Below are positions 8,845-56,835 of a stretch of DNA of 64,000 nt, one piece after another (position 1 is the first letter of the stretch; the number at the start of each line of letters is the position of its first letter). Under the pieces are notes generated by a model. The model saw nothing but the letters and a program-made list of their open reading frames with translations. It did not search any database and was not told where the DNA came from. The DNA is taken from IMG/VR virus record IMGVR_UViG_3300036781_000418, positions 186,001 to 250,000 of that record; one strand, 5' to 3'. Both the position numbers and the translations under genes were made by a program.

Positions 8845-10377
8845 ATGCAGACAATTATTCCCAAGAACGACGTCCTCGACGCCTCCAGAATGCGTCGTCG
8901 CGCCACCCCCGCCAAGCCACCGTTGCGCTTCAACATGGTGCTAGCCGCGGACTCCTACAAGTTCTCCCACCCGTTCTCGTACCCCAAGAACATCAGCGGC
9001 TTGTTCTCGTACATCGAGGCCCGGACACATGGTGCACACATCATGATTCCGGCCGGCTTCGAGGCCACGTTGCAGCGCTACCTGTCGGTGCCCATCACGA
9101 TGGAGGACATCGACGAGGCCGAGGCCTTCATGAAGCGCCACGGCGAACCGTTCGCCCGGAACGTCTGGGAGCACGTCCTCACCAAGTACCACGGCTACCT
9201 GCCCGTGATCATCCGTGCCGTGCCTGAGGGAACTCCCGTCAAGAGCAGCAACATCATGGTGTCGATCATGTGCGTCGACGAGCTGGTCGCCGAGAACATC
9301 TTCTGGCTGGCCTCCTTCCTTGAGACCTTCCTGCTCCGTGCCGTCTGGTACCCTACCACGCTGGCCACCAACGATTACGAGTCGAAGCTCGAGATCAAGC
9401 GCTTCTACAAGATTGCCGGTGAGGACCTTGCCGGCATCGACTTCGCCGTCCACTGCTTTGGCGCTCGAGGTACGACCTGTCACGAGCAAGCCGAGATCGC
9501 CGGTGTCCACGCCTTCATGTACAAGGGCTCGGACACGGTTGAGGGCATTCGCTACGTCAACCACTACTACGACTGCGAGATGGCCGCGTTCTCCGTGCCC
9601 GCCACCGAACACTCGGTCGCCACGTCGTTCGGGCTGACGAGTGAAGACGAAGTCCGCTACATCGACCATCAGCTGACGGCGTTCGCGAAGCAAGGTGCGA
9701 TCATCTCGCTGGTGGCCGACTCCAAGGACACGTCGCGCTTCGTGGATCACATCTGCACGACGTTCCATGACCGCATCGTCGACCTCCATGAACGGCTTGG
9801 TGTGAAGGTTGTCGTCCGTCCAGACAGCGGCGATCCGCTTGAGATCGTGCCGATGATCTTGGACAAGCTGGCCAAGGCCTTCCCGACCACTCGCACCGTG
9901 CACGGCTACATCAAACTGTACGGCGGCGTTGGTATCCTACAAGGTGACGGCGTCGACACCATGCTGATCAAGACGTTGCTCGGCAACATCATGGCCCGCA
10001 ACTACTCGCCTGCAAACATCATCTTCGGTTCGGGCGGTGCGCTCCTGCAGAAGGTTAACCGTGACACGCACAAGTGGGCGCAGAAGGGCAGCGCCATCTT
10101 GGTGAGGACTCCTGTCGCGGTCGGCGCGCACGGTGGCACCTTCACGTACGCGTGGCAAGGCATCGCCAAGGACCCCATCACCGACCCTGGCAAGAAGTCG
10201 AAGGAAGGTCTCCTGACCCTGATGCGGAACTCCTTCACCGGCCAGTACGCCACCATCCGCATCGACAAGGATCCGGTGAAAGACGAGTGGGTGGACGTGA
10301 TGGAGGACATCTACGACTGTGGACAGTTCTTCAACCTGTCCAACATGGACCAAATCCGCACACGCTGCGCCATCTGA
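8845..10377 (+). CDS. nadV: nicotinamide phosphoribosyltransferase (NAMPT)
   Basis: ADSYKFSH, SYIEAR, VWYPTT, FGARG, VPATEHS, VVRPDSGDP, LQGDG, FGSGGALLQKVNRDT, KDPITDPGKKSK. Confidence 0.93.
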   Translation: MQTIIPKNDVLDASRMRRRATPAKPPLRFNMVLAADSYKFSHPFSYPKNISGLFSYIEARTHGAHIMIPAGFEATLQRYLSVPITMEDIDEAEAFMKRHGEPFARNVWEHVLTKYHGYLPVIIRAVPEGTPVKSSNIMVSIMCVDELVAENIFWLASFLETFLLRAVWYPTTLATNDYESKLEIKRFYKIAGEDLAGIDFAVHCFGARGTTCHEQAEIAGVHAFMYKGSDTVEGIRYVNHYYDCEMAAFSVPATEHSVATSFGLTSEDEVRYIDHQLTAFAKQGAIISLVADSKDTSRFVDHICTTFHDRIVDLHERLGVKVVVRPDSGDPLEIVPMILDKLAKAFPTTRTVHGYIKLYGGVGILQGDGVDTMLIKTLLGNIMARNYSPANIIFGSGGALLQKVNRDTHKWAQKGSAILVRTPVAVGAHGGTFTYAWQGIAKDPITDPGKKSKEGLLTLMRNSFTGQYATIRIDKDPVKDEWVDVMEDIYDCGQFFNLSNMDQIRTRCAI

Positions 10378-10379
10378 TC

Positions 10380-10406
10380 AAGGGAGCTTCGGCTCCCTTC
10401 CTTCTT
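10380..10406 (+). terminator. putative intrinsic terminator
   Basis: AAGGGAGC-TTCG-GCTCCCTT hairpin right after nadV, followed by a pyrimidine run. Confidence 0.65.
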
Positions 10407-10416
10407 GGAGCTCACC

Positions 10417-10617
10417 ATGATCGTCCTTCTCATCGTCACCAAGCACGTCACCAAAGCCGGTGATGTGGCCGGCATGAACTGCCTTGTTCATGAGACGGAT
10501 CCGTACACCGCCAACATGATGAAGGCTGGCGCGCAAGAGCACAACCGCGGCAAGCCAGGCGTTGTCCGAAGCGAAATGACGACTGTGGAGATCATTGAGC
10601 TCGCCAACACCAACTAG
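10417..10617 (+). CDS. hypothetical protein
   Basis: GGAG RBS before ATG 10417. Confidence 0.55.
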   Translation: MIVLLIVTKHVTKAGDVAGMNCLVHETDPYTANMMKAGAQEHNRGKPGVVRSEMTTVEIIELANTN

Positions 10618-12861: not shown

Positions 12862-12911
12862 ATCCTGACTAACTTGGTGTACGCGTAGCGTCGCCGAGTT
12901 AGAATGTACCT

Positions 12912-13205
12912 ACCATGTCGAAAGACACGGTGATTGTCGTAATTCGGCTTGAGTTGATGAGGGTAACACGGGGGTTCAACTCCCCCCAGCTCCACCAAAA
13001 GGGTTTACTGGAATCTTTCTGATGGGGCTGAACGGGTAATCGACTACGCTACTGAAATGATAGACGCGACATGCAAGGCGATCTGCACCGATGATGTTTG
13101 TCGGAAAGAAGCAAAATCTTTAAATGCTAACAACAGCGTTTACGCTCTCGCCGCTTAAAAACCGTGCGCAGCTGGGGCCGATCGCCTTATAATCCAAAGA
13201 TCACT
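12912..13205 (+). ncRNA. ssrA: circularly permuted (two-piece) tmRNA, tag ANNSVYALAA*
   Basis: T-arm plus CAGCTCCACCA (ends 12997) lies upstream of the GGGGCTG 5' end (13024); G3-U70 pair; resume codon GCT at 13126 after TAAAT; TAA at 13156-13158; outer ends approximate. Confidence 0.92.
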
Positions 13206-13229
13206 CAAGGGGCTTCGGCCCCTTGTTTT
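13206..13229 (+). terminator. intrinsic terminator of tmRNA
   Basis: CAAGGGGC-TTCG-GCCCCTTG-TTTT. Confidence 0.85.
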
Positions 13230-13303
13230 ATGCCCAGACCCAAACAATCTGTTGGCGTAAAACCGTAAATAGTCTATGATGCCTCCATTGGTCGAGGCAC
13301 CCC

Positions 13304-13732
13304 ATGTTTATCAAAGTCGCGCTAGCAGCTCTTACCTTCAGCTCCCTTGCGGTCGCGAGTCTCGTGACGCAACCTGAAGACAACTACCTTTCCGTCGCCA
13401 AGTCGCCGGACCTGGAGTTCACGATTGATAAACGAACGATGGTGGTCGACGTCGAGACCACCTCCTTCGAGTTCGACCTCCACACCAAGTTCGCTCATCC
13501 GATCGAGTACAAGGGTAAGGGTGCGACGGAGGTCGTTGAGCGGACGCTCGTAATGTGTCACGAGCAGGCCATGGTCACGTTGAAGCAGCGAGTCCTGGAC
13601 GAAGACGGCGGTCTGATCGACCAGCGTGACACCTCCAAAATTTACCCGTACGCCAAGCCCGGGTTTCACCGTCAACTCCTGCAGTTCTTCTGCGCCCCTG
13701 CGGAAAAGCGTAAGCCGGACACCACCGTCTGA
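13304..13732 (+). CDS. secreted/periplasmic hypothetical protein
   Basis: N-terminal signal peptide; TAAATA at 13266; GAGG RBS. Confidence 0.65.
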   Translation: MFIKVALAALTFSSLAVASLVTQPEDNYLSVAKSPDLEFTIDKRTMVVDVETTSFEFDLHTKFAHPIEYKGKGATEVVERTLVMCHEQAMVTLKQRVLDEDGGLIDQRDTSKIYPYAKPGFHRQLLQFFCAPAEKRKPDTTV

Positions 13733-13792
13733 ACCTGAACTTTACACTTACCGTTGTCACCGTTACATGACGATGTGTTAAGATGCCGATAC

Positions 13793-13869
13793 GACTCCAT
13801 AGCTCAGTTGGTTAGAGCAGCGGCCTTCAAAGCCGCCGGTCCTCGGTTCGAGCCCGAGTGGAGCCACCA
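13793..13869 (+). tRNA. tRNA with UCA anticodon (opal-reading), copy 1
   Basis: GACTCCA/TGGAGCC-ACCA acceptor; anticodon arm GCGGC-CTTCAAA-GCCGC; canonical D and T arms; short variable loop. Confidence 0.88.
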
Positions 13870-13928
13870 AATGTCGTCGTCCGTGGATGCGACGGATCAG
13901 GAGCTGTTGGCCTGAACTTTAGTCCATT

Positions 13929-14005
13929 GCGCCCATAGCTCAGCGGTCCAGAGCAACTTGCTTCAAACTTGTTGGTCCTCGGTTCGAATCCGAGTGGGCG
14001 CACCA
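13929..14005 (+). tRNA. tRNA with UCA anticodon (opal-reading), copy 2
   Basis: GCGCCCA/TGGGCGC-ACCA; anticodon arm ACTTG-CTTCAAA-CTTGT with two U-U mismatches. Confidence 0.78.
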
Positions 14006-14025: not shown

Positions 14026-14481
14026 ATGCTACCCGCCGTCTGCGTGCTTATCCAGCACCACCAAGACAAGGACTTCTACATCGCCGTCTCGCGTCGCGAC
14101 GACCCCTCCCACTGGGGGCTGCCTGGCGGCAAGGACGACGATGAACACGAGTCGAACATTGAAGCCGCCCAGCGTGAGTGCAACGAGGAGATCGGCATCC
14201 TCGCCGCCCTAACGTCCTTCGAGCCCATGTACGTGGGACTTTGTCCGGGTGACGTGAACTTCTGGGTGACCACCTACGCGTTCATGGACCCTGAGCCGAT
14301 CCACTTCGACGAGCTCGTGGCCGAGAAAGGCCTGGTCGTCGAGTGGAAGTCCGAGCAAGACCTCTGTGATCCGAAGTTGACGCCCTTCGCGGCCTACAAC
14401 GTCGAGGTCTTCAAGTCGCTCCGCAACCGTTGGCCAAGTGGCGTGATTCCAGTTCCTGGTGTCTCCTACTTCAAGGGCTGA
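14026..14481 (+). CDS. Nudix hydrolase
   Basis: WGLPGGK..ESNIEAAQRECNEEIG Nudix box; GAGG RBS before ATG 14026. Confidence 0.85.
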   Translation: MLPAVCVLIQHHQDKDFYIAVSRRDDPSHWGLPGGKDDDEHESNIEAAQRECNEEIGILAALTSFEPMYVGLCPGDVNFWVTTYAFMDPEPIHFDELVAEKGLVVEWKSEQDLCDPKLTPFAAYNVEVFKSLRNRWPSGVIPVPGVSYFKG

Positions 14482-17550: not shown

Positions 17551-18077
17551 CTTCGTTTATCGGCGCTGACCATGAAGCTCAGGATCGGTCGTTGGGCTGG
17601 CCCTGAGCTTCCAGCTGGTGCCACTTTTTCACGCCAACCATGCTCAAGCTGCTTGTCAAGCTCGGCCTTCGTGGCGGCGGCCATGTCAATCTTAAACAGA
17701 CCGCCAACCAGCTGGTGCGACCACTTGTTGAACAAGTTAGCTGGAGGTACGAACACGTAGCGCCCAGCGGCGACTAGTGATTCAAGGTACTCATTGATCG
17801 CCTTCTTAGCTCCCTTGAAGCGCAACTCAGCTGGAAGATAGTCTTGTGGGTTGTCATGCTCGTTACCCCAGCCTGCAATGCTGGTCAACTCACAGTCAAA
17901 CATGATGCACTCCCAGAACTCACCATCACCAAGTAGCGAACGTTCGCTCCCGTTGGTGGATGAGCGCTTCAGGTCATAGCGCTCAAGCAGGCGGTGGAGT
18001 GCGATTGATACTTCCTGCCTAACGTAAGGGAGCTGATCGGCTCCACGCTTCTGCATGTGAATTTCGCGTAGCTTCAT
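17547..18077 (-). CDS. hypothetical protein, last gene of the AAA/vWA operon
   Basis: TAATG-coupled to the vWA gene; ADQLPY motif resembles the paralog family at 22729-25806. Confidence 0.65.
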   Translation of the reverse strand: MKLREIHMQKRGADQLPYVRQEVSIALHRLLERYDLKRSSTNGSERSLLGDGEFWECIMFDCELTSIAGWGNEHDNPQDYLPAELRFKGAKKAINEYLESLVAAGRYVFVPPANLFNKWSHQLVGGLFKIDMAAATKAELDKQLEHGWREKVAPAGSSGPAQRPILSFMVSADKRS

Positions 18078-19867
18078 TAGAAGTGGCTGATGAGGGCGCC
18101 GCCCATACCGAGTTGACGAACGATAGAGTCGTAGGTGCCCACACCGTCGAAGATCGCGCCGAACTGCGATGGGTGCCCCTTGATCAGCTTCTTCAGCGTG
18201 GCGAAGTTTGCGCCTTCGGCCATGTCTGAGTCTGACATGACGATGACGTTGTACTTCTTACGGAGCAGAATTTCCAACTGGCCCGCCAAGTCATCGGTGA
18301 AGTTGGTCGCGCCACCTTGGTGCTCCTTGAACACGTGGTCCAAGCTGAACGAGGTACCGCCACCGCCTTCGTCGGCCTCAGAGGCCGACTTCAGCTTGAT
18401 GGCTGAGCCACCTGAGCCAGAGACTGTGCAGCGGTAGAACGTGTAATCGTCGGAGAACTCGCAGACGATGAACGTCTTGGCGACGCTCGACTGCTTTGAC
18501 GCCTCACGTGCGTTGGCCAACACCTTGTCGATGTGGGTGCCCATGGAACCAGACGAGTCGATGACGAGGCAGAGCTTGACCTTCTGGGCTGGCACGACGA
18601 CCTCACCTGGCTTGACGGCCGCGGCGCCAGTCTTCTGAACCATGTCGATCGAGGTGATGTTGCGACGGTGGACCTTCTGGTAGGTCGTCTCCGTCGTGTC
18701 GGACGAGCGCATCAGGCGGTCCAGCAGCGCGCGCCAGTTGTAGCGTGGCTTGACGGCCTGAACTTCACGGCGTGCGCCGGAGTTGTTACCTTGGCCACCC
18801 TTACTGGCGGTGTTCGTCTTTGGATCGGGCCCGTCTTGGGCACCGTCTTCGTGTTCACCCGCCGCCTTGCTGGTCTTCTTGGAGTGGTTCTCCATGTCGC
18901 TTTCAGACGGGGCTTCACCGGTGCGCGGATCCTCTTGGTTGTCCGAGTCGATGTGATCGTCCGTCAGGTCACCCAGCTGCTGCTCAACCTGCTTCTGTTG
19001 TGGCTTCGTCAGCTTGTCGAACTCAGACTTAACAAGCTCGTACATCTCACGGTAGGTGAGCTGGCGGTCGTAGTTGATCAGGTCGTTGAACAACCCCATC
19101 GGCAGCGGTTGGTGTCCAGCCTTCGTCAGGTCGTAGTTGGAGCGGAAGTCACCAGTCCAGTTGTGGATCAGTGGCGAGCCGCCCATCACCTTCATGTGGT
19201 GGAAGTCGCCGTGCGTGTAGTGGTAGAACTCGTGCAGAATCAGGAACTCAAGGGTCGAGTATTCGTTTGGAAACTCACCACCGTTGGCCTCGTACTTCTT
19301 GGACTTCGGCTTGATCTTTTGGGCGTGCGCGAAGTTCAGCAGGGTCTGCATGAACGGCACGTTGAAGATGAACTCGCCGTTGCCCGTCGCGGCCGCCGTG
19401 TCGACGTCCTTGAACTGCTTGTTGTCCTTCTCATCGTCGCCTGGAATCAAGATGATACGTGGCGAGATGATTGGCTTCTTGTTGTAGTAGTTCCGAAGCG
19501 GGAAGATCGAGCGGTTCTCGGCCTTCACACGACGGACGAGCTTGGAGAACAGCACTGGTGAGAACTGTGGACCGCTGTTGTCGGCGTGCTGGCCTTCTTT
19601 GCGAGCGTCCGAATAGCGCTTGAACAGCTCCTGCTCAATGATGTTCTTTTGGATTGAGTGGTACAGGATCGGCGCCTTCGTCGCGATCGAGCTGAACTTC
19701 GCCGCCTTCGCGTCGATCTCGTCCTTGATCACCGACTCCTTTTTGCCCTCAAGCTGGGCGAGGTACGAGAGCGCCGCCTTGATGCGCGCGTCGGCCCAGG
19801 TCGACTGCGGGGAGACCGTGTCGACCTTGGCCTTGATGTTGTTGATCATCTCGGCTTCATTGATCAC
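18077..19867 (-). CDS. metallopeptidase-vWA fusion (DUF2201-like), MoxR partner
   Basis: ILHEFYH (HExxH); acidic/Gly linker; LVIDSSGSM MIDAS; GGATNF; VMSDSD. Confidence 0.85.
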   Translation of the reverse strand: MINEAEMINNIKAKVDTVSPQSTWADARIKAALSYLAQLEGKKESVIKDEIDAKAAKFSSIATKAPILYHSIQKNIIEQELFKRYSDARKEGQHADNSGPQFSPVLFSKLVRRVKAENRSIFPLRNYYNKKPIISPRIILIPGDDEKDNKQFKDVDTAAATGNGEFIFNVPFMQTLLNFAHAQKIKPKSKKYEANGGEFPNEYSTLEFLILHEFYHYTHGDFHHMKVMGGSPLIHNWTGDFRSNYDLTKAGHQPLPMGLFNDLINYDRQLTYREMYELVKSEFDKLTKPQQKQVEQQLGDLTDDHIDSDNQEDPRTGEAPSESDMENHSKKTSKAAGEHEDGAQDGPDPKTNTASKGGQGNNSGARREVQAVKPRYNWRALLDRLMRSSDTTETTYQKVHRRNITSIDMVQKTGAAAVKPGEVVVPAQKVKLCLVIDSSGSMGTHIDKVLANAREASKQSSVAKTFIVCEFSDDYTFYRCTVSGSGGSAIKLKSASEADEGGGGTSFSLDHVFKEHQGGATNFTDDLAGQLEILLRKKYNVIVMSDSDMAEGANFATLKKLIKGHPSQFGAIFDGVGTYDSIVRQLGMGGALISHF

Positions 19868-22419
19868 TTGAACAGCTCCGTCACGTACTTGCGCATCTTG
19901 CCGTTGAAGTCAACGACGTCGGTGATGATGTCGGCGTCGGCTGACGCCAGGTGGATGACCACCTCACGGAGCGCGGCCTTCGCGGCGTCGACCATCTTGT
20001 TGGAGACGTCGTGCGCCTTCATCGCGTGCACGACTTCACGCATGATGTATTCTAGCTTAGCGATCTCTTCGTCTTGAACCTTGATGGCCAGGGTCTTCTT
20101 GTCCATGTTCTTCGTCTTACCGAAGGCTTGGAAGGCGTTCTTCGCGTCGTTCTTGACGGCGTCCATCAGGAACTCGCTGAGCTCTTCCTTGAACTGGACG
20201 GAGTCGACGGACGTGATGTAGTTCACGAACTCGAGGTCGTTCAGCAGGTGCTTGGAGTGGTCGTCAAACGGACGTTGGAGCAGGCTCTTGAGGTCCTTCA
20301 GCGAGTCGACCTTGCGCTTGAACAGCTCACCAAGGGTGAAGTCGTCCGTCGACATGATCCAGTCGTTGATGCTTTCGATCGACTCAGGGGAGTCGACGCC
20401 GTGCTTGTGCTTGATCACGTACTCAAGGGTGTGCTGCACGGCGCGGGAGATGGCGGTGCGGATAGCCGCTTCGCTCTCAGTCACGTCGTGTTCTGGGTCC
20501 TCAAGCTTCTTGGACTCACGCTTGTACGTGCGGTCGACCGACTTCGCCATGTTCGTCAGCATGTCCGTGTACTCACGAGCGGAGACGTATAGGCCGGTGT
20601 CGGCGATGTTCAAGACGAAGTGCGGGTCGGCGCCGTTGACCTTACCACTGCGGGTGCGGAAGCGGTCCACCAACGCGTAGAGGACGTTGTGCGAGATCTG
20701 TGAAGCCTCTGGTGAGACCTTCAGGTCGACTGTACTCAAGTGCTTCTTGAACTTGTCCCACGACACGCCGACTGGAATCACGTCCATGACGTCGCGCACG
20801 TGCTTGGTCAGCTCCTGCGTACCCTTACCAGTTGGGTTGACGGCGGCCACGACGACGGAGTCGTCCGGCAGCTTGTACTCAGGCGTGAACTCCTTCTCCA
20901 ACAGAACCTTACGGATCGCGTTGAAGACCTTCACGTTGGTGCGGTTCATTTCGTCGAAGAAGATCAGGTAGTGAACGTCTTGGCCCTTCCAAGCGGCGAA
21001 GCGGGCGTCGCCCTTCTCCTTGCCGAAGAACTTGACGAGACGTTCCTTGAGGTTTGCCTCACCGGTCTTCATCTGCTTCTGGATGTCGTCCCAGAGCGGC
21101 GGCTTGGAGAACGAAACCTGCAGGCCGTCCTTACCACGCTTGGAGAGCGGCACGCCGATGACTTCTTCCGCGGAGAGGTTCTGCACGTCGATGAAGACTG
21201 GAACGAGGTTCAAGTCGGTCGCGAGGTCGGTGATGTGCTTCGTCTTACCCGCACCTGGCAGGCCGCCGATGACTGGGATGTACTTGCGGGCGTTGCCCAG
21301 CTTCATCTTCGTCTCGATCTGGTGCTTCAGCGTCGAGCGCCAGTCGGCGTCGTCCACGTTGTCTGGGTTACCCTCGAAGCCGTGGTCTTCCTTGATCAGC
21401 TCGTTGACGGCCTTGATGACCGCTTCGGAGATCGCGGCCTTGTCGCCGGTCTTGTAGTTCTGGAAGTTGATCTGCACGTTCTTCAACAGTGCGTCCGCGT
21501 CTTCCTTGGACTTCAGTGGGAAGGCGGAGTTGATGTAGATCAGGAGCTGTTCCCAACGGCGTGGCGAGACGCGCACGTCCGCGTTGATGTCGTCGTGGGA
21601 GAGGATGCCCTTGTGCTCTTCCTTCGTCATCAAGTCGTAGAACTTCTGGAGCAGCTTCTCGTTCAGCTGAACCTTCTTGTTGTTCTTGTACTTGTTGATG
21701 ATGTAGGCGAACCACTCGTCCGTGCTTGGGGTGTCGAAGTTCAGCATGCGGAAGTCCTCGTTTTCGAGGATGTCGCCCACACCGGAGTCGACCAAGTTCG
21801 ACGCGAAGATCACGTAGAGGTCGTCTGGGAGTGGGTTGGAACCGATGCGACCGTTCAGGATCGAACGCAGCATGTTGCGGATCGAGCTGGACGTCTGACG
21901 GAAGTACTCGTCCAGGAACAGGATGGCGCGGTACTTCGAGCGGATGTCCTTGATCTCGTCTGGAATGGCCTTGTCGGAACCGCCAAGCTCTTCCCAAATT
22001 TGCTTCAAGTCACCACGGGCCATGACGGCCTTGATCACGCCGGAGTCGGTGGCCTTCGAGGCCTCCTTGACTTCGGAGTACAGGGCCGACTTAGCCAGCT
22101 CGATGTCGTACTCTGAGCCACCCTTCGTGTCGATGTGCAGGTGCTCGGTCTTTGAGGCGCCGCTCGGCTTGACCACGATGAACGGGATGTCGATGATGTG
22201 CTCTTCGACGATGTGCGGGGTTTCAATGATGATCAGCTCAAGGCCGAGCAGCGTGGCCATGTCCTTGACGAACGAGGTCTTACCAACCCCGGTGTCGCCA
22301 CCGAGCAGGTAGCCGGCCTGGCTTAGGCCGTCATGCTTGGCGTGCATGTTGTCAAAGATGTGCTCAAGGGTCTCGACTTTGCCGCTAATGTCGAGGTTTG
22401 CAACGTCTAGTTTCTTCAT
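19864..22419 (-). CDS. MoxR-like AAA+ ATPase with two tandem AAA modules
   Basis: Module 1 GDTGVGKT / LFLDEYFR / FASN; module 2 GLPGAGKT / IFFDEMNR / AAVNP. Confidence 0.88.
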   Translation of the reverse strand: MKKLDVANLDISGKVETLEHIFDNMHAKHDGLSQAGYLLGGDTGVGKTSFVKDMATLLGLELIIIETPHIVEEHIIDIPFIVVKPSGASKTEHLHIDTKGGSEYDIELAKSALYSEVKEASKATDSGVIKAVMARGDLKQIWEELGGSDKAIPDEIKDIRSKYRAILFLDEYFRQTSSSIRNMLRSILNGRIGSNPLPDDLYVIFASNLVDSGVGDILENEDFRMLNFDTPSTDEWFAYIINKYKNNKKVQLNEKLLQKFYDLMTKEEHKGILSHDDINADVRVSPRRWEQLLIYINSAFPLKSKEDADALLKNVQINFQNYKTGDKAAISEAVIKAVNELIKEDHGFEGNPDNVDDADWRSTLKHQIETKMKLGNARKYIPVIGGLPGAGKTKHITDLATDLNLVPVFIDVQNLSAEEVIGVPLSKRGKDGLQVSFSKPPLWDDIQKQMKTGEANLKERLVKFFGKEKGDARFAAWKGQDVHYLIFFDEMNRTNVKVFNAIRKVLLEKEFTPEYKLPDDSVVVAAVNPTGKGTQELTKHVRDVMDVIPVGVSWDKFKKHLSTVDLKVSPEASQISHNVLYALVDRFRTRSGKVNGADPHFVLNIADTGLYVSAREYTDMLTNMAKSVDRTYKRESKKLEDPEHDVTESEAAIRTAISRAVQHTLEYVIKHKHGVDSPESIESINDWIMSTDDFTLGELFKRKVDSLKDLKSLLQRPFDDHSKHLLNDLEFVNYITSVDSVQFKEELSEFLMDAVKNDAKNAFQAFGKTKNMDKKTLAIKVQDEEIAKLEYIMREVVHAMKAHDVSNKMVDAAKAALREVVIHLASADADIITDVVDFNGKMRKYVTELFK

Positions 22420-22422
22420 GGC

Positions 22423-22638
22423 TTAGTCGTAGTTGTGGTACTTCTTGTGGGCGACCGGGTGGGTCTTGGCGAGCTGCTGGTGGGCGAAGGCACGGAGCGC
22501 TTCGAGCTCCTCTTCCTCAGTCTTGAACTTCGGCAGCTTCTTGGCTTCTTCCAGCTTGGCGGCCTCGTCTACCTTGACGGTTGGGACGGAGAGCTCGACG
22601 GGCGGCTTGTTCTCTCCTTGGTAGCGAAATAGCTTCAT
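22423..22638 (-). CDS. small hypothetical protein
   Basis: AGGA RBS; first gene after the minus-strand TAAATA. Confidence 0.65.
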   Translation of the reverse strand: MKLFRYQGENKPPVELSVPTVKVDEAAKLEEAKKLPKFKTEEEELEALRAFAHQQLAKTHPVAHKKYHNYD

Positions 22639-35007: not shown

Positions 35008-35093
35008 GCTGGAGTAGCCAAGTGGTTGACGGCAACTGCCTTGTAAGCAGTCGGAGTTATCCCGCGCAGGTTCGAATCCTGTCTCCAGCTCCA
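35008..35093 (+). tRNA. tRNA-Thr(UGU) with an unusually long variable arm
   Basis: ACTGC-CTTGTAA-GCAGT; extra arm CGGAGTTATCCCGC; TCCA. Confidence 0.8.
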
Positions 35094-35336: not shown

Positions 35337-35415
35337 GTCGAAGTGGGAGAGTGGATTACTTCCGACAGGCTGCAACCCTGTAGACGCATCGGTTCGATTC
35401 CGGCCTTCGACTCCA
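35337..35415 (+). tRNA. tRNA-Cys(GCA)
   Basis: ACAGG-CTGCAAC-CCTGT; U73-CCA. Confidence 0.85.
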
Positions 35416-35623: not shown

Positions 35624-35711
35624 AGCGGGGTAGAGCGTAGTTTGGTAGCGTGTTGGGCTCATAACCCAGCGTCGTAAGACCCCGGAGGTTCGAGTCCTCC
35701 TCCCGCAACCA
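35624..35711 (+). tRNA. initiator-like tRNA-fMet(CAU) with an extra arm
   Basis: 1:72 mismatch; GGG/CCC anticodon stem; CTCATAA loop; variable hairpin GTC-GTAA-GAC. Confidence 0.75.
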
Positions 35712-38906: not shown

Positions 38907-39584
38907 ATGCTGCTCGCGGCCCTAGCCCTCTCAACCACGATCTCGACCTGTTCCTGGAACAACCCAGGTGCCGATCCGTACATGGGTCGTTTTGAGGACG
39001 CGATCGACCGCTACGAGTTCATCGACGAAGACGTGCGGGCCAGGCTGAAGGCCAAGGTTGCGGCACATGAGTACGACGACATGGTGGAGATCAAGCGTGA
39101 CGAGATCCACGGACGGCAGGAGTACTCCAACGAGCTCTCCAACATGAACTTCGGCAAGGGTCGGGTCTGCGTGACGGTGGACCGGTCTGGTTGGAAGCCG
39201 GAGCACGTTGAACGTGGCCTGGTGTTCTGTGTCGACGGCACCTGCATCTTGATTCCCACGGTTTGCCGTAACGTGACCGTAATAACTCGGCTTCAACGGC
39301 TGACGGGTGGCGCCTCAGCTGGGCCGCTTGAAGGCCAGACGTTCGGTCTCGGTCCAGCTCCAGTGTCGCCACCCACCTCGCTACCGGTCGATGACGTCAC
39401 GTACGGCCTCTCGGCGACACCGGTGGGGCCGAGTACGTTTAGTTCGCCACCGATGTTGTACCAACCAATCGTCGTTCCACCGTTGCCGCCACTCACCGCG
39501 ATCCCCGTCGTGCCCGAGCCGTCCAGCCTGTGGCTGATGCTCGTCGGGCTGGCCATGATCGCGGTTCGAAAGCTCCGTCGGTAA
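38907..39584 (+). CDS. PEP-CTERM protein (MHFG-family-like)
   Basis: Signal peptide; CSWNNPGADPYMG..MNFGKGRVC..CRNV; C-terminal VPEPSSLWLMLVGLAMIAVRKLRR. Confidence 0.85.
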   Translation: MLLAALALSTTISTCSWNNPGADPYMGRFEDAIDRYEFIDEDVRARLKAKVAAHEYDDMVEIKRDEIHGRQEYSNELSNMNFGKGRVCVTVDRSGWKPEHVERGLVFCVDGTCILIPTVCRNVTVITRLQRLTGGASAGPLEGQTFGLGPAPVSPPTSLPVDDVTYGLSATPVGPSTFSSPPMLYQPIVVPPLPPLTAIPVVPEPSSLWLMLVGLAMIAVRKLRR

Positions 39585-46605: not shown

Positions 46606-47439
46606 ATGAAAAAACTCCTGCTTTCTGTACTGGTGGTCGCGGCGTCGTTCGCCGTCCACGCAGATCCGGTCCCGGATCCTGGCATGCTCACCTTGACCGG
46701 CTATCAGAACGGCTCCGCGCCGATCGGTACCGTGACGGTGAATCCGCCCGGCTTGTTCAACAACCAAAGCGAACTGGTCGCGGTCAGCGGCCTCAAGGGT
46801 TCGTTCGACGATGGCTTTGGTGCTGTCAGTCTCAACGCGCTGTTCTGCGTCGAGCTGTTCGCTCCCACGGGCAACATCGGTCAATCCCTGGCCTACACGC
46901 AGAACACGCCGGGTCTCGGCGCCTACAGCATGGGTTTCACGGCGCTGCAGTCCTCGCGCCTGAACAACCTGTTCGCCAAGGAATTCGCGACCTACGGCGT
47001 CGTTGGTGGAACTACGGCCACGCAGTCGGCCGCCACGCAGCTCTCCATCTGGGAGATCCTGTACGGCGGTGATGCTGGCTTCGGTGATCTGACGGGCAAC
47101 CTGCTGGAAACCCTGGGTGTGGCCGACACGAACGGCTTCTGGTCGACCGACCTGGCCGGTGCACGCACCACGGCTGAAGGCCTGCTGGCTGGCATCGACT
47201 CGTACGACTCCTCGGGCTTCAACGTCTCGCTGACGTCGTACAACAACGGCCTGTCGAAGCCCGGCTACCAGGACTTCATCTCGGTGGACGTCAGTCTCGG
47301 TTCGCAATGCGGTCTGAACCCGCTGGGTTGCGATCCGACCACGGTGCCGGAACCTGACTCGCTCGCTCTCACCGGTGTCGGTCTGATGGGTCTCGGCTTC
47401 GTCGCTCGCCGTCGCAAGGCCAAGCAGCTGCAAAGCTGA
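46606..47439 (+). CDS. PEP-CTERM sorting-domain protein
   Basis: Signal peptide; FCVEL..AATQLSIWEILY; C-terminal VPEPDSLALTGVGLMGLGFVARRRK. Confidence 0.9.
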   Translation: MKKLLLSVLVVAASFAVHADPVPDPGMLTLTGYQNGSAPIGTVTVNPPGLFNNQSELVAVSGLKGSFDDGFGAVSLNALFCVELFAPTGNIGQSLAYTQNTPGLGAYSMGFTALQSSRLNNLFAKEFATYGVVGGTTATQSAATQLSIWEILYGGDAGFGDLTGNLLETLGVADTNGFWSTDLAGARTTAEGLLAGIDSYDSSGFNVSLTSYNNGLSKPGYQDFISVDVSLGSQCGLNPLGCDPTTVPEPDSLALTGVGLMGLGFVARRRKAKQLQS

Positions 47440-50379: not shown

Positions 50380-50766
50380 ATGACGACCATTCTTCGATGG
50401 CCGCCGACCTCGGTAACGCACCATGAAGTCTACAAGGACCAGTTCACCTGGGTCAGCGAAGACGAACGCGACAAGCTGATCGCCGAAGTTCAACGGATCG
50501 CGGCCGACTACATCGTCTTGGCTCCTCGTTCGGCTAACTTGATCCACAGCTTCGCCACCATGGCGGAGACTGCTGGCTACCACTTGTCCATGGGCATGGA
50601 CATTCGCAACCACTACTTGCTCTACCACACGAGCCCGCTGACGAAGCGGTGGCGCGATAACCCCTACTCGCACGACATCCGCTTCGGTATCGACTTTTCA
50701 CCTGACCACCCAGACGCGATCTCAACTCTGATCTTGAAGGAAGTATGGATTCAACTTCATCCGTAA
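50380..50766 (+). CDS. hypothetical protein
   Basis: AGGAG RBS. Confidence 0.6.
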   Translation: MTTILRWPPTSVTHHEVYKDQFTWVSEDERDKLIAEVQRIAADYIVLAPRSANLIHSFATMAETAGYHLSMGMDIRNHYLLYHTSPLTKRWRDNPYSHDIRFGIDFSPDHPDAISTLILKEVWIQLHP

Positions 50767-51365
50767 AGGTGCTGTTCCTCGACGTGGACGGCGTGCTGAA
50801 CACATCGACCAGCTGCCTGCTGAAGTGCGGCATGTACCTGTCGACGTGCGCCCAGCGTGACGCGTGGTGGGAGCTGTTTCACCTGGTCGGTCATGATGAC
50901 CAGGTGCCGTACGGTCCGACCTACAGTGTCAACTCGATCGACCCAATGGCCGTCGGGCTGGTGAACCGCTTGTTGGACAAGGAACCGACCCTGCGGATCG
51001 TATTCTCCAGCTCGCACCGTTCGTTCTTTGCGGCCTCAACCTACGAGTACCCGTGCGAGTTCGCCTCGCCGATTCACTTGGAGCGGCTGACGACGTACCT
51101 CACGTCGCTTGGTATCAAGATTCAGGGTCGGTTGATCGGCATCACACCGCGCCTGCACACTCGCCGTGGTCTGGAGATCAACACCTGGCTGCAGGCCTAC
51201 GACGGTCCGGAGATCACGCACCACGCGGCGGTCGACGACGAGGCGGCTATCTACCCGTACGAGACGACGCTGATCCGAACCGACGCGAAGTTCGGCCTGA
51301 CGGCGGACAAGTACTTCGAGCTCTGCAACGCGCTGGGCATCCACGAATCACCGATCATCTACTGA
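50745..51365 (+). CDS. HAD domain protein (Swiss-army-knife RNA-repair type)
   Basis: VLFLDVDGVLN, IVFSSSHR, RGLEINTWL, AAVDD, GLT. Confidence 0.8.
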   Translation: MDSTSSVKVLFLDVDGVLNTSTSCLLKCGMYLSTCAQRDAWWELFHLVGHDDQVPYGPTYSVNSIDPMAVGLVNRLLDKEPTLRIVFSSSHRSFFAASTYEYPCEFASPIHLERLTTYLTSLGIKIQGRLIGITPRLHTRRGLEINTWLQAYDGPEITHHAAVDDEAAIYPYETTLIRTDAKFGLTADKYFELCNALGIHESPIIY

Positions 51366-53734: not shown

Positions 53735-54802
53735 ATGACCGCTCTCAAAACCTTCGAGCCAAACACCCTTGGTCGTGACATTGTCCTTGGTGACATGCAC
53801 GGCAAGCTTGGGCTCGTGCAGAAGGTGCTGACCCACCTGAACTACGATCCACAAGTTGACCGTCTCTTCTCGGTTGGTGACCTTGTTGACCGTGGCGAGG
53901 ACAACCTCGGCTGCCTACGACTCCTGCGTCAGGGCCTGAACGCCGTACAGTCCAACCATGGCGAGTTCATGTCCCACGCCTACTTCGGTCCGAACGACTC
54001 GACGTTGGCGATGAACTGGCCCAGCAACGGCGGCATGTGGGCGATCGACCAATGGGTTGAGTGGCACGACTTTCTGCACACCAACAAGCACATGAGTCAA
54101 GAGGCGGCCGAGTTGGCCGAACTTGCTGAGCTCCAACGTGAGCTGCCCGTGCTGATCACCATCAACCACCGCAACGGCAAGAAGTACCACATCGTCCACG
54201 CGGAGTTGCCGTACCTTCGGATGTACGAGCCGATCACGGACCGTCAGCTGTCTGACCCTGCCAAGGTACAGTTCATGTCGGATCGAAAGTATGACCGGTA
54301 CAACCTTGAGCGCTGCTTCCTTTGGCTGCGTGACATGTTCGGCTCGTTCCATGAGGCGGACATGTCGAACGAAGCCGTCTTTAAGCGGCGAGTTGCGGGA
54401 ATGGCCCACCACTCGCACATCAACATGCGTGAAATCTTCACGGACCAGCTGAGCCACGTAATCTCAGGCCACACGCCAGTACACCGCCCGTTCACCATGG
54501 TGGGCCAGACGAACATCGACACGGGCTCCTATAAGGAGTTTAAGTACAAGTGGGCCGGTGTCACCGCGTTGGTCCTAGACGACTGGACCTTCTGGAAGGC
54601 TCGATCCGAAGGTGTCGAGCAGGTTCAGCCGATGACTATGACCTTTGAGGACTTTGAAAGCTATGGACAGAACAATGACGTTCAAGTGCTCCCCGGAACA
54701 GGAGGAGTACATCATGGATCACCTACAACGGGGGACGAAGGACGTCCTGATCCATCACTCGGAACGGACGTGGATTGCGAACCACGTACACAAGAAGGTT
54801 GA
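53735..54802 (+). CDS. metallophosphoesterase (NinI/PphA-like Ser/Thr phosphatase)
   Basis: GDMHG, GDLVDRG, SNHG, VHA, GHTP, IDTG. Confidence 0.9.
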   Translation: MTALKTFEPNTLGRDIVLGDMHGKLGLVQKVLTHLNYDPQVDRLFSVGDLVDRGEDNLGCLRLLRQGLNAVQSNHGEFMSHAYFGPNDSTLAMNWPSNGGMWAIDQWVEWHDFLHTNKHMSQEAAELAELAELQRELPVLITINHRNGKKYHIVHAELPYLRMYEPITDRQLSDPAKVQFMSDRKYDRYNLERCFLWLRDMFGSFHEADMSNEAVFKRRVAGMAHHSHINMREIFTDQLSHVISGHTPVHRPFTMVGQTNIDTGSYKEFKYKWAGVTALVLDDWTFWKARSEGVEQVQPMTMTFEDFESYGQNNDVQVLPGTGGVHHGSPTTGDEGRPDPSLGTDVDCEPRTQEG

Positions 54803-55731: not shown

Positions 55732-56835
55732 ATGGAACGATACCTGGTCGGCGGTGCAGTCCGCGACGCGCTGATGAACGTGACACCAAAAGACCGTGAC
55801 TGGGTCCTTGTCGGCGCTACGCAGCAGGACATTGACGACATGGTCAAGGAAGGGTACCAGTGGGTTGGTGCCGACTTCCCCGTGCTGATCCACCCAAAAA
55901 CGAAAGAGGAGCACGCCCTCGCCCGAGTCGAACGTAAAGTCGGCCATGGCTACAACGGCTTTGAGGTGGACACGGAGGGCGTCACCCTCGAGCAGGACCT
56001 GGCACGTCGCGACCTGACCATCAACGCGATGGCTTGGGACACGAGCCCATCGATGGTGTACGAAGACGACATCATCGACCCGTACGGCGGTCGCAATGAC
56101 ATCAAGCACAAGATCATCCGTCACACGACGATGGCCTTCGTTGAAGATCCGCTCCGAGCCCTGCGTGTCGCGCGCTTCGCCGCCCGCCTCAGCTTCAGCG
56201 TCCACCCCACCACACACGACCTCATCAAGCACATGGGAACGTCCGGTGAACTGGAACACCTGACCGACGAACGTGTCTGGGCCGAGGTGAAGAAGGGCCT
56301 AAGCGGTCCGCACCCCACCGTCTTCATGTACCAGCTCTACAACCTCGGCATCATCAAGCACTGCGCAGTACTGCGTGAGGTCTTTCCATGGACCTACGAG
56401 TTCGTCGCCTACGGCGTGACGAAGTACCTGCGCATGGTCAAGGAGGAAGATCGCTTCGAACTGGGCCTGGCCTGCATGATGGCGTGTGGTGACGTTGAAA
56501 AGATCAAGGCCATTCCGTCCAGGACGAAGAAGGTCTACAACAACATCGGCTACCTGAACGAGATCCATGACTGGTCAAACGTGGCGGCCGACAAGTTGGT
56601 GACGGTCATCACGAAGATCGGCGGCCTACGTGAAGGCACGATGTTTGACGACATCGTCACCTGCCTCCAGCTGACGAAGCCAACGCAGATCGAGATCATC
56701 GACATCTTGACGGCCAGCCGCATGGTGATGCAGCAAGTTCGAGCCGACCAGTTCCCAGACCTTGAAGGCCAAGCGCTCGGGGCCGCGATGATCCAAGAAC
56801 GTGCGAAGCGCGTTGCTGAGCTGTTGTTACAATAA
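55732..56835 (+). CDS. cca: tRNA nucleotidyltransferase (CCA-adding enzyme)
   Basis: [53 protein letters not shown]. Confidence 0.93.

Follow-up and report, generated by a model that had tools for sequence, protein, structure and literature searches.

Two UGA-reading tRNA genes and a shortened release-factor-1 gene with an in-frame UGA, their candidate target, in a standard-code jumbo phage

A 343-kb jumbo phage that uses UGA as its commonest stop codon carries two tandem tRNA genes, here called Sup1 and Sup2, whose UCA anticodon reads UGA. The same phage also carries, about 87 kb away, a shortened RF1-like release factor gene interrupted by a conserved in-frame UGA, at a position which is Trp in RF1 of Escherichia coli and Thermotoga maritima and Phe in that of Thermus thermophilus. 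We tentatively propose that the two tRNAs are true UGA decoders, probably inserting Trp, and that they open this interrupted gene; this link is inferred from sequence alone. The preliminary description had reported the tRNA pair and its features from the sequence, and our analysis confirms that observation. Its interpretation, in which the amino acid was left undetermined and the RNAs were considered as suppressors, uncharged competitors of RF2 or nuclease decoys, is partly supported.

The sequence analysed (the window) is a stretch of 64,000 nucleotides corresponding to positions 186,001-250,000 of the contig IMGVR_UViG_3300036781_000418 (JGI Ga0376653_0000087, 342,591 bp). Both tRNA genes were found by ARAGORN with anticodon tca and matched the Rfam tRNA model RF00005 over its full length, with 64.2 bits (E 5.9e-13) for Sup1 and 62.5 bits (E 1.7e-12) for Sup2, against a gathering score of 29 bits. 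Both have the anticodon loop CUUCAAA, a 7-bp acceptor stem and a 5-bp T stem, a 5-nt variable loop (CGGTC and TGGTC, respectively), A73 and an encoded CCA. The conserved tertiary nucleotides U8, A14, G18-G19, A21, U33, G53, T54-Psi55-C56, A58 and C61, as well as the R15:Y48 pair, are all present in both genes. The U-U mismatches in the anticodon stem of Sup2 that had been described are also flagged by Rfam. A pattern built on the features shared by the two genes matches twice in the window, against 0.00 expected in shuffled sequences. As described, the pair lies outside the tRNA arrays.

Coordinates of the tRNA pair, its neighbours and the candidate target (window numbering unless stated)
Feature	Position	Strand	Description
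Permuted (two-piece) tmRNA gene	12905..13249	+	Tag ANNSVYALAA; 543 nt upstream of Sup1; ARAGORN; Rfam beta_tmRNA 113.9 bits, tmRNA_permuted 105.8 bits
Flanking ORF (142 aa)	13304..13732	+	Between the tmRNA and Sup1; no Pfam or PHROG hit; predicted Adhesin_E-like fold (ESM Atlas, TM 0.75); not SmpB
Leader repeat, copy 1	13734..13744	+	CCTGAACTTTA, 49 nt upstream of Sup1
Sup1	13793..13869	+	tRNA gene, anticodon UCA; A2.C71 mismatch; fully paired G+C-rich anticodon stem (GCGGC/GCCGC)
Leader repeat, copy 2	13911..13921	+	CCTGAACTTTA, 8 nt upstream of Sup2
Sup2	13929..14005	+	tRNA gene, anticodon UCA; U29.U41 and U30.U40 mismatches in the anticodon stem; acceptor stem identical to that of the phage's own tRNA-Val(GAC)
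Nudix hydrolase gene	14026..14481	+	Starts 20 nt after Sup2; Pfam NUDIX 3.3e-09; PHROG MutT/NUDIX
tRNA arrays in the window	29.4-37.4 kb		
Second tRNA array	contig 253.6-259.5 kb		17 tRNAs, including an ordinary tRNA-Trp(CCA)
RF1dN, RF1-like gene lacking domain 1	contig 286,587-287,261 (locus L276, 18726-19400)		224 codons; TGA at codon 36; ends in TAA

Two points of the preliminary description need to be corrected. The acceptor-stem mismatch of Sup1 had not been reported, and the statement that the two tRNAs have different bodies is overstated. They are 77% identical, with an identical T stem and a near-identical variable loop, and all differences fall in paired stem positions or in the normally variable positions 16, 17, 20, 44, 59 and 60. 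The pairs 3-70, 4-69, 27-43 and 31-39 changed on both sides and still pair. Moreover, the exact 11-mer CCTGAACTTTA precedes both genes and occurs nowhere else exactly in the window, and we read it as a remnant of the duplicated unit. Sup1 and Sup2 are thus diverged tandem duplicates. After 23% divergence, they retain an identical 7-nt anticodon loop with the A36-A37-A38 motif typical of tRNAs reading U-starting codons, together with A73, CCA and all conserved tertiary positions, which is the pattern of purifying selection on two working tRNAs. The anticodon stem of Sup2 is nevertheless weak, and its minimum-energy fold computed with ViennaRNA is not a cloverleaf, so that this copy may be weak or inactive.

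The phage belongs to the XacN1/RsoM2USA-like jumbo phages and has a GC content of 57%. Its AAA protein and NAMPT are 41% and 40% identical to those of the Ralstonia jumbo phage RsoM2USA, its nearest cultured relative. The major capsid protein of RsoM2USA has about 300 relatives in IMG/VR. The window contains 23 tRNA genes in addition to the tmRNA. The Sup pair is located in a region of NAD-salvage genes, and no terminator-like site was detected between the upstream ORF and the tRNAs or after Sup2, so that the pair is probably co-transcribed with the Nudix gene.

The genome uses the standard code. TGA ends 43 of 80 crude genes in the window and 74 of 151 in the 121 kb assembled by walking along the contig, 27 of them in ATGA start/stop overlaps, and the standard-code gene calls of JGI are dense throughout the part examined. 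A structural screen of these 121 kb, which recovers the RF1dN site, finds no other convincing interrupted gene, whereas two composition-based screens missed the RF1dN site and are uninformative. Two same-frame pairs of ORFs joined by a TGA, NAMPT + 79 codons and 104 + 88 codons, are no more than chance adjacency allows and have no homology support. The genome thus does not show the features of a stop-codon-recoded (code 4-like) phage in the 38% of its length that was examined.

The pair is lineage-specific. The pattern of its shared arms occurs only in the source contig in IMG/VR, and it was not found elsewhere in the JGI metagenomes scanned. None of 31 relatives fetched around the AAA gene has a UCA tRNA or a tmRNA within 10 kb; these relatives conserve only the AAA-DUF2201 pair and not the tRNA flanks, which precludes an empty-site comparison. 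UCA tRNAs of the same general build are rare but recurrent, being found in 3 other IMG/VR contigs, 28 metagenome contigs and 5 bacterial MAG or genome contigs. Most of them have A73, several encode CCA, and one phage of 185-349 kb also carries two.

Concerning the amino acid, the preliminary description correctly excluded tRNA-Sec and correctly stated that the identity is undetermined on classical rules. Compared with the experimentally defined bacterial identity sets (Table 1 of PMC9976931), neither tRNA fits any set completely. For Trp, G73 and C34 are lacking, although C35, A36 and A9 are present and U34 is as in natural code-4 tRNA-Trp(UCA). For Arg, A20, the main determinant for E. coli ArgRS, is replaced by U and position 36 is A instead of U or G, so that only C35 and A73 fit, while the phage's own tRNA-Arg(CCU) does have A20. 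Gly and Cys lack U73, although Sup2 does have G1-C72, C2-G71 and G3-C70. For Lys, U34 and A73 fit, but positions 35 and 36 are C and A instead of U. With the anticodon masked, the body of Sup1 is closest to phage tRNA-Lys(UUU) genes (78-80%) and to an amber suppressor of Sinorhizobium phage Phosso (81%), suggesting Lys ancestry rather than Lys identity; the nearest body to Sup2 in the collected set is Sup1. On the other hand, the anticodon arm of Sup1 resembles that of the phage's own tRNA-Trp(CCA). All seven ordinary phage tRNA-Trp(CCA) genes collected, including that of this phage, have G73. The use of A73 to exclude Trp in the preliminary description is however weakened, since a 2025 screen describes a phage tRNA-Trp(UCA) with A73 that is charged by a phage TrpRS (PMC12636597).

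No aminoacyl-tRNA synthetase or release factor gene lies in the window. Walking the contig rightwards, we reached a release factor gene which had been called as two ORFs of 35 and 184 aa. They are in the same frame, separated by a single TGA. Searched separately, the two pieces are collinear on RF1, matching positions 107-137 and 157-332 of the prfA model with 157 bits, against 89 bits for RF2 and 33 bits for PrfH, and Pfam gives PCRF and RF-1. The only alignment spanning the TGA used a stored database protein (P0035:1-80) and not a read-through reference. The score is well below the NCBIfam equivalog cut-off of 400 bits for the full-length four-domain protein and domain 1 is absent: the gene, which we call RF1dN, belongs to an RF1-derived truncated family and is not an orthologue of prfA. 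It retains the catalytic GGQ motif (GAGGQHRNK) and has PPT (RIPPTE), the RF1-type PxT decoding motif, both conserved in homologues. An independent Logan assembly of the same sample shows the same split. The family is large, with 3,544 database hits, and is known here only from metagenomes. GenBank phages contain only distant RF1 homologues, and a tblastn search found none in Ralstonia, Xanthomonas or Agrobacterium phages, so those phages lack this gene. We found no description of this target in the literature searches that we ran.

The in-frame UGA is conserved. DNA was retrieved for five homologues from separate contigs of 1.2 to 481 kb. All six family members thus checked as DNA, 64-86% identical in protein and with a GC content of 0.42-0.56, have TGA at codon 36 in the context GGC-TGA-A; all encode their two other Trp residues by TGG, and all end in TAA. 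In database entries, 47 ‘full-length’ homologues display Trp at position 36, and a tree of the family suggested switching between TGG and stop. However, the DNA of one of them (locus L281) has TGA at codon 36, its source having translated with code 4. The Trp of these entries is therefore circular evidence and the two apparent states are gene-caller artefacts, so that both inferences are withdrawn. The evidence for Trp now rests only on canonical RF1 of E. coli and T. maritima, TGA being one transition from TGG. In a related phage (locus L278), the interrupted gene lies beside SmpB, a permuted tmRNA and a tRNA array, while in the phage studied here it is the Sup pair that neighbours the tmRNA, which may be a member of the same termination and rescue gene set.

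We suppose, tentatively, that Sup1 and Sup2 are functional elongator-type tRNAs which the phage uses not to recode its genome but to read through a programmed in-frame UGA in at least one of its own genes. Since UGA is recognized only by RF2, full-length RF1dN could be made only when UGA decoding beats RF2. The suppressor tRNAs would therefore switch on, or boost, a phage factor terminating at UAA and UAG, shifting how termination works in the infected cell. What the analysis establishes is limited to the two tRNA genes and their conserved architecture, the standard-code use of TGA, the RF1dN gene and the conservation of its UGA at an aromatic, usually Trp, position. That the tRNAs are expressed from the surrounding operon and charged, that they insert Trp, that they act on this UGA, and the regulatory logic itself, all remain inferences. 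Several features do not fit easily with this view. A73 and the Lys-like body of Sup1 do not match bacterial Trp identity, and no TrpRS or other synthetase was seen in the roughly 131 kb of the contig examined, 62% of the genome lying outside it. The RF1dN homologues of L278 and of a second locus, L279, have the same UGA but no UCA tRNA within 10 kb on either side, and it is not excluded that ordinary near-cognate read-through by tRNA-Trp(CCA) would be enough. The tRNAs and RF1dN do not form an operon, and efficient UGA suppression would also extend about half of the phage's own proteins. Among the options of the preliminary description, that of suppressors is nevertheless clearly favored; nothing that we found supports a decoy or an uncharged RF2 competitor, although neither is excluded.

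Alternatively, though we consider this unlikely, the tRNAs could cause broad UGA read-through without a specific phage target, damaging host proteins (UGA is the main stop codon in G+C-rich hosts) or bypassing a host response that depends on RF2 or UGA termination, with the tmRNA, peptidyl-tRNA hydrolase and RF1dN cleaning up the consequences. The vicinity of the tmRNA is in line with this possibility, as are PTH2, two RNA ligases, a CCA-adding enzyme and RNA-repair-type domains encoded by the phage. TGA-terminated phage genes are also somewhat more often followed by a second in-frame stop within 10 codons (45% vs 27%, Fisher p = 0.03), a weak hint of tolerance to read-through, and in E. coli a phage-derived UGA suppressor is toxic in proportion to RF2 weakness (PMC12636597). 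However, with half of its genes ending in TGA, many in ATGA overlaps, the phage would harm itself. No RF2 inhibitor or host target was identified, and this reading does not explain the conserved UGA in RF1dN.

Still less likely, the UGA of RF1dN would be read by ordinary near-cognate tRNA-Trp(CCA), as a low-level attenuator or RF2 sensor, and Sup1 and Sup2 would insert another amino acid for some other purpose, such as Arg via C35, an ArgRS determinant, or Lys via A73 and the Lys-like body. The homologues without a nearby UCA tRNA, although most of the L278 and L279 genomes was not covered, and the phage's own tRNA-Trp(CCA) are compatible with this view. Against it, the determinants A20 for ArgRS and U35 and U36 for LysRS are absent, and the presence of two conserved UGA decoders in a genome with a conserved UGA-interrupted gene would be a coincidence. 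It is also improbable that the pair is evolutionary debris, i.e. duplicated tRNA genes whose anticodons drifted to UCA and which, neutral or nearly inactive, were retained by chance in one lineage. The restriction of the pair to this contig, the absence of a UCA tRNA at the syntenic site in the 31 relatives and the stem mismatches of each copy could suggest it, but the identical anticodon loops, the CCA, the tertiary positions and the compensated stems kept by both copies argue against it, as does the recurrence of UCA tRNAs with A73 and CCA in other large phage contigs. The least likely is a non-translational role, as uncharged A-site competitors of RF2, decoys for an anticodon nuclease or other tRNA-targeting defence, or sources of tRNA fragments: phages carry tRNAs that evade or absorb such defences, this phage invests heavily in RNA repair, and the weak anticodon stem of Sup2 is unusual for a decoder, but no host tRNA with this anticodon exists to be mimicked except the architecturally different tRNA-Sec, the encoded CCA, A73, EF-Tu-compatible T arm and A36-A37-A38 loop are all features of a decoding tRNA, and no nuclease or defence link was found.

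Phage opal suppressors as such are already known. What is new here is a tandem, selected pair in a G+C-rich phage that relies on TGA, and a specific, conserved and testable candidate target. The current model explains suppressor tRNAs of phages that still use the suppressed codon only as steps towards genome recoding in low-GC phages. If the link holds, it would explain a recurring oddity of phage genomes and add a new kind of translational gate, read-through control of a termination factor. It would also flag a large family of RF1-derived proteins that gene callers currently split or translate with the wrong code. The tRNAs may also interest genetic-code engineers as natural UGA decoders with A73. 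A broader and more doubtful reading would be that jumbo phages of this group run an as yet undescribed termination switch, in which a domain-1-less RF1 gene is kept silent by a universally conserved in-frame UGA at a Trp codon and is opened when RF2 loses the competition at UGA, a job done in this phage by the dedicated tRNA pair. This would be the trans-acting, read-through counterpart of prfB autoregulation. Suppressor tRNAs in standard-code, G+C-rich phages would then be gene-specific regulators rather than relics or first steps of genome recoding.

The association of a UCA tRNA with an RF1-type gene in the same phage echoes the ‘code-change module’ of TGA-recoded phages of the Jade clade, which consists of suppressor tRNA(UCA), RF1 and TrpRS (Borges et al., 10.1101/2021.08.26.457843), and the proposed logic is the same, to weaken UGA termination while securing UAA/UAG termination, with Trp as the inserted residue. 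Here, however, the genome is G+C-rich and retains TGA as its most used stop, whereas the published route to recoding starts from low GC and rare TGA. Only one UGA-interrupted gene was found in 121 kb, and it is the RF1-type gene itself, devoid of domain 1 and distant from the tRNAs; no TrpRS was found in the part of the contig examined. The phage TrpRS:tRNA-Trp(UCA) pairs AP1 and HF2 (PMC12636597) and code-4 bacterial tRNA-Trp(UCA) are likewise class-I tRNAs with a UCA anticodon decoding UGA as Trp, and the HF2 tRNA has A73 like Sup1 and Sup2. These phage tRNAs lie beside a dedicated TrpRS in recoded phages, and the Sup1 body is Lys-like rather than Trp-like outside the anticodon arm. Bacterial tRNA-Sec (selC) shares the UCA anticodon and the CUUCAAA loop, and ARAGORN labels both genes ‘SeC’ from the anticodon, but it has an 8/5 acceptor/T architecture, a long extra arm and G73.

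Within the same broad phage group, unexplained suppressor tRNAs are recorded in the standard-code jumbo phages Atu_ph07 (UCA; PMC6102473), RsoM2USA (CUA; PMC8504454) and XacN1 (two CUA; PMC5852040), in genomes that still use the corresponding stop codon and apart from or at the edge of the tRNA arrays. Those reports found no targets, in silico read-through of XacN1 having found nothing, while here there are two tandem diverged copies, both UCA, and a candidate target. Finally, the interrupted RF1dN gene recalls the autoregulation of prfB (RF2), in which a release factor gene also carries a conserved early in-frame UGA (codon 26 in prfB, codon 36 here), making its expression dependent on the efficiency of RF2 termination at UGA. 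While prfB requires a +1 frameshift and senses its own product, in RF1dN the frame continues unchanged, so that read-through is needed. Its product is of RF1 type and should not recognize UGA; the loop would therefore not be autoregulatory but would report RF2 or suppressor activity in trans.

Beyond the window, the source contig carries a truncated RF1-like release-factor gene, which lacks domain 1 but keeps GGQ and PxT, and which is interrupted by a single in-frame TGA at codon 36. All 6 family members checked as DNA have the same TGA, in the context GGC-TGA-A, and all end in TAA. At this position canonical RF1 has Trp in E. coli and T. maritima and Phe in T. thermophilus. The 'full-length' versions of this RF1-like protein found in the database (entries P0010-P0119, the 222-226-aa class, and the homologue at locus L281) show Trp at position 36 only because their sources translated TGA with code 4, whereas other sources split the gene into ORFs of 35 aa and about 183 aa. 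The family is systematically mis-called in public data.

Coordinates of the features considered in this section (contig, source contig; L numbers, individual loci)
Feature	Location	Strand
Truncated RF1-like gene	contig 286,587-287,261 (locus L276 18726-19400), outside the window	
RF1-like homologue translated with code 4 by its source	locus L281 278-949	
Permuted tmRNA	window 12905-13249	+
tRNA and RNA maintenance set	window 50745-51365, 53735-54802, 55732-56835; contig ~176.8, ~260.0 and ~262.4 kb; Logan gene list beyond 288 kb	
Second tRNA array	contig 253.6-259.5 kb (locus L125 14943-20760), just beyond the window	
Unusually long tRNAs: Thr(TGT), Cys(GCA), Met(CAT)	window 35008-35093, 35337-35415, 35624-35711	
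Two proteins with a PEP-CTERM motif	window 38907-39584 and 46606-47439	
NAMPT gene and the same-frame codons after it	window 8845-10377 and 10405-10617	
AAA/MoxR-like ATPase and DUF2201 gene pair	window 18077-22638	-
Bacterial UCA tRNA, Gemmatimonadales MAG JBOHSB010000462.1	locus L121 269-341	
Two UCA tRNAs of another large phage	locus L091 2474-2549 and 3754-3830	
Amber suppressor of Sinorhizobium phage Phosso	locus L004 5998-6073	
Opal suppressor of an unrelated phage	locus L096 2465-2538	

Directly upstream of the suppressor pair, the phage encodes a permuted (two-piece) tmRNA with the tag ANNSVYALAA, whose best match is beta_tmRNA (113.9 bits). No SmpB was seen in the roughly 131 kb examined, whereas a related phage (locus L278) has SmpB next to its tmRNA. 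The genome also carries a large tRNA and RNA maintenance set, which comprises a HAD domain of RNA-repair proteins, a metallophosphoesterase, a CCA-adding enzyme, two RNA ligases, the peptidyl-tRNA hydrolase PTH2, a YqeY/GatB-like domain protein and a Ro60/TROVE protein. The second tRNA array contains 17 genes, including a tRNA-Trp(CCA) with G73, and together with the tRNAs of the window this makes at least 40 tRNA genes in this phage. Three of the window's tRNAs are unusually long for their assigned isotype, Thr(TGT) with 86 nt, Cys(GCA) with 79 nt and Met(CAT) with 88 nt, suggesting either extra-arm insertions or mis-assignment by ARAGORN.

Two phage proteins end in a PEP-CTERM sorting motif (Pfam PF07589), which hints at a host with an exosortase system rather than Ralstonia. 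The NAMPT gene ends in TGA and is followed in the same frame by 79 codons with coding-like composition. This may be chance adjacency or a read-through extension; homologues end where NAMPT ends. The AAA/MoxR-like ATPase together with the DUF2201 metallopeptidase-like gene forms the only block conserved with relatives in this region, and it is inverted relative to all flanking genes. The RsoM2USA orthologue of the ATPase was reported as a virion protein (PMC8504454).

UCA tRNAs were also encountered in other genomes. In the Gemmatimonadales MAG, a bacterial UCA tRNA with Gly-type acceptor features (G1-C72, C2-G71, G3-C70, U73) sits in a Thr-[UCA]-Tyr-Thr tRNA cluster, where a tRNA-Gly(UCC) would be expected. 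It could be a natural glycine opal suppressor or, alternatively, a sign of a code-25-like reassignment. Another large phage (locus L091, the same phage as locus L101, contig up to 349 kb) carries two UCA tRNAs 1.2 kb apart, of which one is canonical with A73 and CCA, while the other is aberrant, with loop CCTCAAA and an unusual D arm. Finally, the amber (CUA) suppressor of Sinorhizobium phage Phosso and the opal (UCA) suppressor at locus L096, which come from unrelated phages, share the 5′ strand of the acceptor stem (GCUUCCA) and A73, and the anticodon stem of the Phosso tRNA (GCGGU/ACCGC) matches those of other opal suppressors found here (loci L089 and L118). This suggests a common suppressor chassis reused with different anticodons.
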